64,000 bases of DNA from Ophelia neglecta (lineage: Eukaryota): the NCBI GenBank assembly GCA_965285935.1, contig OZ260667.1:23994001-24058000 (forward strand), written 5' to 3'. The first letter of the stretch is position 1. Every line of letters starts with the position of its first letter. The position numbers were made by a program, and so were the translations under genes. The notes under the pieces are model-generated. The model was not told where the DNA came from, ran no database searches, and worked only from the letters and a program-made list of their open reading frames with translations. This document shows positions 17,505-21,843 of this stretch, piece after piece.

Positions 17505-18753
17505 ATGGAGGGAATTCTGACATTGGTGTACGTATTTGCCCTGGTAGGATCTGTTATCTCTAAACCTTGGCTGGAAGAAGAGCGCTCTCAAGGTATTCTG
17601 TGCCACAAGTTCAAAGTTTTATTTTCATCTAGAAGAAAAAGAAATCATTTGGAATGAATCATAAATATATTGCATTGGTTAAGTACAAAAAAGTGTCAGT
17701 TAATTCATTATAGCAATTACAAATTCGGTAGTTACGCGCAATGTTAACACACTATTTTAATACACACCTTTATTCATTTATGAATGCAATTCTGTATTAG
17801 TTTTTCCATTTCATGTCATTTTTTTAGCTCACGCGAAGTAGAGTAGTTGATGATGTGTCTATGTTTCCAGATTTCCACAACAGGCGTGGTCTTGGCCTGA
17901 ATCCACGGGTGTTTCAAGCTTCTAAGAGCAAGGCAGAGAAACGAAATGGTGTGACATGTGAAATGTTTGGCCAGCAATGGCCACCTGGGATAATTCAGTC
18001 TGAAAATCCCTGTCAGGTAATTTCCATTAATATAATTCAACTTACTTTCTTTATATGCTCCGAAAAGACAGGACCAATTAACCAACCCTTCCACAACACC
18101 CTATGCAAAGCAACACTAAATATTCAATTGCTCCTACAAAGATATAAAACTCAGCGTTTGGTATCTTATTTGTACAAGAAAAAGGTTACATTCCACTTGT
18201 CTGATAAGAAGAAACTTAATGGAACCCTACAGTCTAATGCTCATACCTAGGACCACACTTACATATATAGGGTAAGTGTGGTCCTAGGTATGAGCATTAG
18301 ACTCTTTAATGACGTACTTTGTTTTGACTCATCCTCTGTTCTAGGAATGCGAATGTTTCGATGACGGACGTGCGTTTTGTTATACTTTTGCGTGTACAAT
18401 ATATATCTGTGCAGACGATGAAGTGTCGTACAAACCCAAGGGCGAGTGCTGTGCAAGATGTGTTCCAGCCAACGGTCAGTTTGTCATTGATCTAGCAACC
18501 AATTACGCTTGTTAACAGACGAATTTGGTCGTGTTTTGACTTATTCAAGGGTGATTTATATGGATTTATCAAGCACCATTGAGAAATATATTTGATGCAT
18601 TATATATCCTATTCGGAAAGAACCATTAATGTTTTTATATTTAGATTGATTTGTTTTATCATCCATTTCCTAGATATTCCTACTAAGGCAAAACGCAGTT
18701 CGCATGAGACAAAAAGAGATTTTCCATTCATCGGGCGAGGATATCCTTTTTGA
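17505..18753 (+). CDS. Gene E: 147-aa secreted precursor with a VWC domain and dibasic-flanked peptides (exons 17505-17592, 17871-18016, 18345-18474, 18674-18753)
   Basis: MEGILTLVYVFALVGSVISKPWLEEERSQDFHNRRGLGLNPRVFQASKSKAEKRNGVTCEMFGQQWPPGIIQSENPCQECECFDDGRAFCYTFACTIYICADDEVSYKPKGECCARCVPANDIPTKAKRSSHETKRDFPFIGRGYPF*. GT-AG introns; exon sizes 88/146/130/80 are identical to gene F. Confidence 0.92.
18231..18303. repeat. Perfect 32-bp inverted repeat with 9-nt loop in intron 2 of gene E
   Basis: agtctaatgctcatacctaggaccacacttac-atatatagg-gtaagtgtggtcctaggtatgagcattagact. Confidence 0.95.
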
Positions 18754-20412
18754 ACCTGATTTTTCGTCACTGAGTGGAACGATGGACAGTTAACATGAAG
18801 ATACTATTCATACCCATACAAAAGCTCATTTATTTGCAATCATTTCTACTAGACTTTAAAGTTATATTATTTTTAGGCATTTTATATATTGATTATATGG
18901 GCTGGAATGTAGAAAGTGACATAAAGATTCAAATGATATTTTGATATTATCTAACTAATAAATGTCAAAAACAACGATGTGGAAGAGATTGATGATGTTG
19001 TTTTTTGCATGTTAATCGTGCATTGTTTACTGATTAGTGTGTAGATAAATTCTGATATTTAAAGTTTTCGTGTGTGAAGGAATGGAAATTGTATTTGAAC
19101 ATTCAATCACCTAAAGTCTTGGAGCCCTCCGACTGAGAATTTTCTTAATTATGGTTGGGAGGTGTTACAAATGGAACGAATCACTCATCATTATACGTGT
19201 ATTGGATTTATTATTCATTAATCATAGATGGTTTATTACTGGCCCTATGGCCCTCTCGATAATACTACCGCGTGAAACCACGGTAATCTTTTTTGAATAA
19301 ATGCATGTGCTGTTATGTGCTTGGAGGGACCATATCTCCTAAATACTGGCCTTTCATACGTTGTTGATGCTTTAGTATCAAAGAATGCAATCAAACAGTG
19401 TTAGCCTATAAATATTAGTTGTACTTATTTGTACATCTTTGTATTTTTAAGGTTTTATAACATTTGAGCGTGGAGTCGGATTGCTTGAGCCCTATCTTGT
19501 AAATAATAGCTAGCTATAGCCTATTTATATTGAATGCATTCGCCAAGTACAAATGATTCAACAAATGATTTTACATCACCCCAAACACAGACCGCCAAAG
19601 ACTTGAACTTATTCTAAAATCAGGCGCGCGCGATTTTCTCATTTTCTCATAAACCACTATGTACAGGGTACTACTTTCAAAACATTTTTGAGTTATTTGA
19701 GTAACTATATTGGATACGAAGCAGTATCGGTCCAAATATATAACGGCAGCCTACGAGGAATTTTATCTTCTTTATATTTACCTTTTTCATTATAGTATGC
19801 AAAGTGGAACACATTTATATGAACGTATATATTTATATTTATCTAAGCCTTTAACTTAGAGTGGGGAAATACATGTAGAGTCGTGACCGACTGCAAAGAA
19901 AAAAGTTACCGACATTAAGGCCTACATGAATTATTCTAATTGAGAAATTAGTCTAAATTAGATAACTATAAGGCGAACCATTCTTTAAAGTCCAAACACT
20001 CCACTAGGTTCATTAAAGTGTAAAAATACCTTCAATCGAAATTTTACCCCTGTTTGATAGAACGGAATGTAATGACCTCAAAATATAGGCCTAAATGTTT
20101 TGGCAAGGTAAACAGCAAAAGTATTTGCACTTGGTGCCATTTAAATGTGTATAAATGTAAATTGCTGTAATTTTCACTATCGTTTTATGATACTTTGCAG
20201 TGTTAGGTTAATTAATATCAATTCACAGGGCGTTAAATTGTGACAAACCTATCATATTCTGCAACGAGATTGACAAAACTCTGCTCTCGTGTATGAGCTA
20301 AATAACAATTTATTTGTCGACAATTCCAGAATTTATTATGACGGTGGGTGTAGGGCATTTGCGTCAACAAGTAATTGTACTAAAGTGCTTATTTTCCAGG
20401 TTAAAATCACTC

Positions 20413-20419
20413 TATAAAA
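20413..20419 (+). promoter_or_regulatory. TATA box, gene F
   Basis: TATAAAA ~115 nt upstream of the ATG, at the position equivalent to gene E. Confidence 0.6.
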
Positions 20420-20532
20420 GTGAAAACTTTGCATTGGGTGGTAAATGGAGTAGAGAAGGTCTCGAACAAATATACAAAACTATTACAAGATCTACATTAT
20501 TTAGATAAGCCTAGTGTAGTTCTTTTTTCGCA

Positions 20533-21843
20533 ATGGAGGGTACTCTGGAATTAATATGTCTACTCGTCCTGGTAGGATCTACCATTGCTAAACCTTGGCA
20601 GGAAGAGAAGCGTTCTCAAGGTATTTTGTGGCATTAGTTCATAGTTTATATTTTGGCTAATCATAAGAAGGAAGTAAAATCGTTTTTGCAGAAAACCTGA
20701 ACTCCATCGCATTGCTTAATCTTACATATTTGACCCATCAACTCATATCCGTAATAACAAATTTGGCTATTACGTGCACTGCATAATTTATACTTTTGCT
20801 TAAACATGAATGTTGTCGAAATGCTCGTGCGGGATGTATAATTATCCTGGTATGTGCAGGACGGTATTTTCTTCGAGTATTTTCCATTTGCACATTATTG
20901 TATTAATGATGTTTCAATGTCTCCAGATTTTCACCACAGGCGTGGTCTTGGCCTGAATCCACGGATGTTTGAGACTGCCAAGGGCAAGACAGAGAAACGA
21001 GATGATGTGACATGTGAACTTTTTGGCCAACAATGGCCAACTGGGGAAATTCCCTCTGAAGATCCCTGTCAGGTAATTTCAGTCAATACGATTCGACTTA
21101 TTATTTTAAGCACTAAAATATACACATGACAAAATATACGCCCAACTATAACCCTGAAGTCGTCAGCAGTTCTGCATAATTTCCCACCCGTATTTCCAAC
21201 GAAAAAATACCCAACTTGACGTATACATTTTATATATACATGGGCCGATCGCATTTAGTTTTTTAATATTTTACCATGTTATTTTTAACTTTAATATTTG
21301 TGATTGGAAATAGAATATGTTCCCTTTGTATTCGCATTAAATTCGTTAAACTAAATTCAATAATGTTGCCACACTTCATTTAACTGACTCATTGTTCTAG
21401 GAATGTGAATGTTACGATAGCGGACAGGCAGCGTGTTTCGAAATGTTTTGTACAATATACATATGTAAAGACAATGAGGTGTCGTACAAACCCGAGGGCG
21501 AGTGCTGTGCAAGATGTGTTCCAGCCAACGGTCAGCCTGACATAAAATCTAAAACATTAGCTTGCTTGTTATTAGAAACACTTTGTCGTATATTAGATCT
21601 ATTGAAATGTTTTATACTGCGGATTTATCTGGCGCCATTGAGTACAAAACTAGACACAATTTATGTCAGAAAAGATACAGGTCTATTTTCCCTTATATCA
21701 TATTCGGAAAGGACGTTTACGCTGTGTTACTTAGATAAATGTTTGTTGTGCTTTATTTTCCAGATATTCCCACTATGGCAAAACGCGGCGGGTACGAGAT
21801 AAAACGAGATTTCCCCTTCCTCAAGCGAGGGTTTCCATTCTAA
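20533..21843 (+). CDS. Gene F: tandem paralog of E, 147 aa (exons 20533-20620, 20927-21072, 21401-21530, 21764-21843)
   Basis: MEGTLELICLLVLVGSTIAKPWQEEKRSQDFHHRRGLGLNPRMFETAKGKTEKRDDVTCELFGQQWPTGEIPSEDPCQECECYDSGQAACFEMFCTIYICKDNEVSYKPEGECCARCVPANDIPTMAKRGGYEIKRDFPFLKRGFPF*. Confidence 0.92.

Follow-up and report, generated by a model that had tools for sequence, protein, structure and literature searches.

Introduction

VWC domains usually belong either to immune effectors or to extracellular proteins that regulate BMP-type signals. Granularin of the mollusc Lymnaea (Smit et al. 2004, as cited in PMC11515477) is reportedly an opsonin of connective-tissue granular cells and consists of a secreted single-VWC module of about 60-70 residues. 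The vertebrate proteins VWC2 and VWC2L (Brorin family) contain two VWC domains and a C-terminal domain, and are not known to have prohormone-type sites. This work deals with two tandem genes, here called E and F, located in a stretch of 64,000 nucleotides of the genome of Ophelia neglecta (assembly GCA_965285935.1, contig OZ260667.1, positions 23,994,001 to 24,058,000, forward strand); the whole of this stretch is referred to below as the window, and coordinates are counted from its first letter. The proteins encoded by E and F carry a single VWC domain between short segments bounded by basic residues.

Two other groups of described proteins have to be considered. The arthropod SVWC/Vago proteins are small secreted single-VWC proteins with eight Cys, which form expanded families linked to immunity and stress (PMC11515477). 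On the other hand, several precursors of oyster ganglia (prohormone-3, GSWN and GWE) give rise to short peptides detected by mass spectrometry and to one Cys-rich peptide (PMC8398477).

E and F resemble SVWC proteins in being small and secreted and in having one VWC-type domain; however, they contain the canonical ten Cys instead of eight, and peptide tails flanked by dibasic sites have not been described for SVWC. Compared by description, granularin shares with them the free single-VWC module, which in E and F is predicted. VWC2 and VWC2L are likewise small secreted VWC proteins, neural in their case, and are the nearest clusters in a language-model search (score 0.81, taken as a lead only), but E and F have one VWC domain instead of two. 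The oyster precursors, also likened by description, coincide with E and F in the signal peptide, the short peptides between dibasic sites, the single Cys-rich module and the small size of the precursor. The E/F design has therefore a precedent, though without a VWC domain: the Cys-rich parts of the oyster precursors are not described as VWC, and the peptides of E and F flank the domain on both sides. Single-VWC secreted proteins and multi-product prohormones are both known, and E and F are best filed as a new combination of the two.

The reading that we favour, and to which an even chance is given, is that E and F form a tandem pair of functional genes, the most elaborated members of a cluster of VWC genes, coding for secretory proproteins of 147 aa that convertases would process into several products.

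Structure of the E and F genes

Judged by their sequence, E and F are real, intact and constrained genes. The models rebuilt from the window, which contains no N, place them as intact tandem duplicates at positions 17505-18753 and 20533-21843. Each is composed of four exons of identical size in both copies (88/146/130/80 nt), all six introns are of the GT-AG type, and each coding sequence of 444 nt corresponds to 147 aa plus the stop codon; the proteins are 70% identical, without gaps, over the 147 aa. The duplicated unit spans about 3.03 kb, including around 430 bp of promoter, and the upstream regions are 67% identical. Both genes have a strong-Kozak ATG, a TATA box about 120-130 nt upstream and an AATAAA 70-200 nt past the stop codon, and in E the final 110 nt before the start codon are free of upstream ATG. 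The elements of both genes are as follows:

17374..17379, + strand: TATA box (gene E), some 130 nt 5' of the ATG
17505..17592, + strand: E exon 1; strong-Kozak ATG, predicted signal peptide (codons 1-19, 17505-17561), start of the pro-region, first basic site at Arg27
17871..18016, + strand: E exon 2; RR 34-35, 17-residue peptide with conserved start, KR 53-54, Cys59 and Cys77; VWC from 17957
18345..18474, + strand: E exon 3; remaining VWC with 8 Cys, to 18461; Pfam PF00093, E-value 0.0051, HMM 21-57
18674..18753, + strand: E exon 4, 80 nt; KR 128-129, 5-aa spacer, KR 135-136, DFPF motif peptide, Gly-Arg 142-143, 4-aa C-terminal peptide, TGA
18957..18962, + strand: polyadenylation signal AATAAA of gene E
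20413..20418, + strand: TATA box of gene F
20533..20620, + strand: F exon 1; predicted signal peptide, KR 26-27
20927..21072, + strand: F exon 2; RR, 17-residue peptide, KR; VWC from 21013
21401..21530, + strand: F exon 3; remaining VWC, to 21517; Pfam PF00093, E-value 0.0034
21764..21843, + strand: F exon 4; three KR (128-129, 135-136, 142-143), FPF peptides of 5 aa and 4 aa, TAA
21913..21918, + strand: polyadenylation signal AATAAA of gene F

The order of segments that a first-pass annotation had claimed for both proteins is exactly present in the two rebuilt copies. A predicted signal peptide (1-19) is followed by three basic sites (26/27, 34-35, 53-54); the ten Cys (59-117) come next, and after them three further basic sites (128-129, 135-136, 142/143), two (F/Y)PF motifs and the stop. 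Two of the sites differ between the paralogues, 26/27 being a single Arg27 in E and KR in F, and 142-143 being Gly-Arg in E and KR in F. By rule, both signal peptides show a short n-region, a hydrophobic core of 12-13 residues and small residues at -3/-1 before Lys20. The C-terminal tail of 26 residues, encoded in both cases by its own exon, consists of KR, a 5-residue spacer, KR, a 5-residue DFPF-type peptide, the site at 142-143 and a 4-residue end in (Y/F)PF.

The splicing of exon 4 is suggested by the comparison of E with F, which is the evidence on which it rests. Reading through intron 3 leads to unrelated ends (13 aa in E and around 90 aa in F); therefore, the exon 3 donor that both genes share, joined to the shared 80-nt exon ending at the same stop codon, appears as the conserved solution. 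Three DNA runs, all from one sample, have contigs that span introns and spacers without joints and are uninformative on splicing. In intron 2 of E (18231-18303), two perfectly matching inverted arms of 32 nt enclose a 9-nt loop. This inverted repeat occurs once in the genome, F lacks it, and the Logan contigs break at it; a hairpin RNA and a local palindromic insertion are both conceivable.

The VWC domain

The ten Cys stand at positions 59, 77, 80, 82, 90, 95, 100, 113, 114 and 117 in both proteins, and the motifs C2-x2-C3-x-C4 and C8-C9-x2-C10 are present, so the proposal of a ten-Cys VWC made in the first-pass annotation agrees with a canonical pattern. An intron interrupts the domain; the Pfam, fold and similarity searches were made on single exons. 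Exon 3 alone matches Pfam VWC PF00093 (HMM 21-57) with E-values of 0.003-0.005 (0.0051 for E and 0.0034 for F) and 17.5-18.1 bits, below the cut-off of 27.6 because the first third of the domain sits in exon 2. The end of exon 2 shows the usual start of a VWC domain (Gly-x2-aromatic-x2-Gly ... Pro-Cys-x2-Cys-x-Cys), and its spacing is matched by a generic VWC exon elsewhere in the same genome.

All language-model neighbours of exon 3 are VWC or VWC2L clusters, at the score given above and likewise as a lead only; those of exon 2 are unrelated bacterial clusters only. The AlphaFold model of exon 3 alone has two strands and a mediocre pLDDT of 69.7; Foldseek comparison of this model with the PDB gave no match at E<=0.001, the matches obtained being ribosomal noise, and a sequence search of the PDB gave none. 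Compared with Pfam, the exons matched neither SVWC at E<=10 nor PF23334.

Constraint on the pair

The exons of E and F are 75-86% identical and free of indels; for the introns, which contain indels, identity over the full length is about 60%. When the 89 coding differences between E and F were placed as neutral substitutions in a simulation, the frame stayed open in 2.7% of the trials and all ten Cys were kept in 0.2%; the four dibasic pairs common to both genes all stayed basic in 2.4%. The earlier claim that the basic sites are kept in both copies thus holds beyond neutral expectation (p=0.024). Moreover, [KR]R pairs are more numerous (4 in E, p=0.034; 6 in F, p=0.00027) than in sequences shuffled at constant composition, and none of them lies inside the VWC domain of either protein.

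The amino acid identity of the flanks (72% and 69%) is close to that of the VWC domain (74%). The separate 80-nt tail exon described in the first-pass annotation is present and constrained in both genes, and it has the lowest dN/dS, 0.21, on few sites. Half of the differences in the tail (4 of 8) fall within the 5-aa spacer (hypergeometric p of about 0.02, post hoc). The conservation of the flanks to the degree of the domain, together with the gathering of the tail changes in the spacer, argues that the flanks are more than throw-away propeptides. Among the variants listed in the DNA runs, six are exonic: three are synonymous and lie in mature parts, and three are nonsynonymous but conservative, all of them in the signal peptide of F (F exon 1); 16 more variants stand outside that list.

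Proposed processing

In both proteins the basic pairs lack Arg at P4, stand beside acidic residues and are followed by a small P1' residue (Ser, Gly, Asn or Asp). Pairs of this kind are typical substrates of PC1/3 and PC2, which belong to the regulated pathway, rather than of furin; on sequence grounds, the dibasic sites of E and F look like prohormone-convertase sites rather than furin sites.

In the processing that we propose, the signal peptide would be removed after residue 19, and the KR and RR pairs would be cut by subtilisin-like prohormone convertases (PC1/3-PC2-type), followed by carboxypeptidase trimming. We infer that this would take place within the regulated pathway. The main folded product would be a free single-VWC module of 73 residues (55-127), and N-terminal peptides of 6-17 aa would be released along with C-terminal FPF peptides of 4-5 aa; should Gly-Arg stay uncut, E would yield a single C-terminal 11-mer instead of the latter.

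Two likenesses of the tail peptides were considered and dropped: the Mytilus-inhibitory-peptide motif (Pro-x-Phe-Val/Ile-amide) is one residue out of register, and the likeness of YPF to opioid-type peptides is too short to have a meaning.

The VWC gene cluster

Six genes for small secreted VWC proteins form a cluster that covers 17 kb (5106-21843), and E and F stand at its end. The other members are:

5106-5208 and 5604-5812, + strand: gene A; signal peptide and bare VWC, 103 aa; Pfam VWC, E-value 4e-4
7236-7376, - strand: A-like exon, which appears to stop short of the last Cys motif
9471-10983, + strand: gene B; four exons; VWC and an extra Cys half-module
13494-15733, + strand: gene D; VWC and an extra Cys half-module; first exon not found

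The first exon of D may have been split off by an element inserted near 12.9-13.2 kb. The half-module of B and D shows a weak likeness to the RECK EGF-like 1 domain (E-values 0.003-0.04). Long homopolymer tracts of G and C occur in introns or spacers of the cluster (13880-14000 and 10410-10440).

Genes A, B and D share with E and F the signal peptide, the single VWC and one or two basic residues located 3-5 positions ahead of Cys1; B and D also share a phase-1 intron 2-3 residues past the last Cys. Nevertheless, A, B and D have neither the N-terminal peptide series nor the FPF tail, their intra-domain introns are in other positions, and no sequence similarity to E/F was detected beyond the Cys pattern. 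The location of E and F in a cluster of plainer single-VWC genes indicates that the VWC module is ancestral and that the flanks are additions specific to E/F.

Searches for relatives

Exons 2, 3 and 4 are present in two copies each in the 762-Mb genome, those of E and F, and the tail is found nowhere else in it. Word-indexed protein searches gave no candidates for exon 2 (open frame 17855-18247, region 1-54) or for F exon 3 (21401-21799, region 1-43). An exhaustive profile search with the alignment of E and F exon 3 against 1.84 billion representatives revealed no relative of about 150 aa; its six matches were CC-x2-C repeat proteins with multiple partial matches and were discarded as relatives.

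A gene for a rhodopsin-type G protein-coupled receptor (GPCR) lies 4.6 kb downstream of F (26453-27460, - strand; intronless, 335 aa, Pfam 7tm_1 E-value 9e-33). Used as a control, it found relatives with 72% identity (Logan ERR14113986), 42% (ENA ERZ25069296) and only about 29% in named species. As close relatives of the control are scarce, the lineage is thinly represented, and the blank result for E/F is weak evidence of absence. No E/F-like exon was found in the flanks of the GPCR relatives in ERR14113986 and ERZ25069296.

In the literature the peptide strings of E and F were not found (text matches to 'GFPF' were swamped by unrelated ones), nor was any work joining VWC with neuropeptide precursors. 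The earlier remark that this combination was not recognised as a described family agrees with the protein, structure and literature searches, in which no described family with this design was found.

Alternative explanations

Several observations weigh against the reading of E and F as convertase-processed proproteins. The signal peptide and the cleavage sites were assessed by rule of thumb, without a predictor; the first basic site of E is a single Arg; and F lacks the amidation Gly, which in E stands at the weak monobasic Gly-Arg site. Besides, dN/dS between E and F is 0.45 overall, their differences by codon position (33/23/34) have no third-position skew (p=0.29), and the pair seems to evolve fast, as do many secreted effectors. 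Within the cluster the peptide flanks are found only in E and F, A, B and D being plain secreted VWC proteins. Finally, no run on record as RNA contains the E/F locus, and no orthologue appeared in three protein searches, the evidence being limited to the paralogue pair. In favour of the same reading, a basic pair likewise precedes Cys1 by 3-5 residues in B and D. A different explanation, which we consider somewhat unlikely, is that E and F are secreted single-VWC effectors, either opsonins or cytokines comparable to granularin, SVWC and Vago or, like Brorin, binders of BMP or growth factors. The mature chain would then function as one unit, entire or after loss of an N-terminal propeptide, with the basic pairs mostly uncut and the tail as an integral binding or anchoring segment. 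The membership of E and F in a fast-evolving cluster of plain secreted VWC genes, which strengthens the non-neuropeptide readings in general, agrees with such effectors, as do the lineage restriction seen in the protein searches, a dN/dS and an absence of skew that are typical of immune or secretory effectors and, as a lead only, the proximity to VWC/VWC2L clusters. However, six positionally conserved basic sites, all of them outside the domain and all with a small P1', are hard to explain without cleavage; the pairs are isolated and beside acidic residues, unlike heparin-type basic clusters, and constraint on the short flanking segments equals that on the domain.

The first-pass annotation had gone further in the direction of neuropeptides, with a VWC module and short peptides released from one precursor, and its interpretation as a whole is partly supported. 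If E and F were true neuropeptide genes, the main products would be short peptides, an amidated 5-mer plus a 4-mer in E and non-amidated ones in F, and the G/K difference would act as an amidation switch between the paralogues. The prohormone-type sites, the conserved motif beside a divergent spacer, the Gly before Arg143 in E and the tail on its own exon with the lowest dN/dS point in this direction, but we judge it decidedly doubtful. Of the repeated F/Y-P-F motif claimed earlier, the two motifs are indeed present in both copies, but two copies per protein of a motif of 3-4 residues make a thin repeat and speak against a strong neuropeptide claim; the amidation signal is not conserved and stands at a monobasic site, the tail peptides occur in no other gene of the genome, no published peptide string matches, the RNA runs lack the locus, and the plain VWC neighbours suggest an effector-type ancestry. 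It is highly improbable, in our opinion, that the two duplicates lack expression or are in decay, or that the four-exon models are wrong. The RNA runs and the protein databases, in which neither the locus nor a homologue appeared, would agree with this, but frame, splice sites, Cys, start, stop, TATA box and poly(A) signal have been kept in both copies after about 20% nucleotide divergence, and the intron 3 read-through ends described above have nothing in common.

Other features of the window and the genome

In the rest of the window, the open frame 38046-38381 (+ strand) has a match to the N-terminal part of the carboxylesterase family (PF00135, E-value 1.5e-6) and is probably one exon of an esterase gene. 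The open frame 51995-52804 (- strand; 269 aa, rich in Ser, Asp and Glu, no Pfam match) probably represents a disordered exon within a larger gene.

Elsewhere in the assembly, the mitochondrial contig (C223; 17,755 bp) carries tRNA genes on both strands, including two for tRNA-Met (CAU and UAU), and conserved positions of its COX1 are read by the invertebrate code (AGR=Ser, ATA=Met, AAA=Lys, TGA=Trp); together these traits suggest a protostome. Long tandem arrays of core histones with H3, H2A, H2B and H4 and a period of about 6.6-7.8 kb are located in C9 (11.23-11.41 Mb and 13.51-13.66 Mb) and also in C1, C2 and C12; no H1 was found in the one repeat unit read, and a look-up of the exact H2A and H2B sequences in the protein collection gave no match.

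Implications

Should the protein remain uncut, E and F would be an ordinary pair of secreted VWC duplicates that evolve fast. If, on the other hand, processing yields the predicted products, the pair would represent a type of precursor that couples a VWC module to short peptides; and, as plainer relatives adjoin E and F in the genome, the steps from a secreted effector gene to a multi-product prohormone would be directly readable. A more ambitious proposal, which is put forward tentatively and thought unlikely as it stands, is that within the 17-kb cluster a plain secreted single-VWC gene became true prohormone genes by gaining the N-terminal peptide series and the tail exon, the VWC module and the FPF peptides being co-released from neuroendocrine cells and the paralogues differing in the amidation of the 5-mer. 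If this were true, the cluster would make visible how a family of effector-type genes gave birth to a lineage-specific neuropeptide gene.

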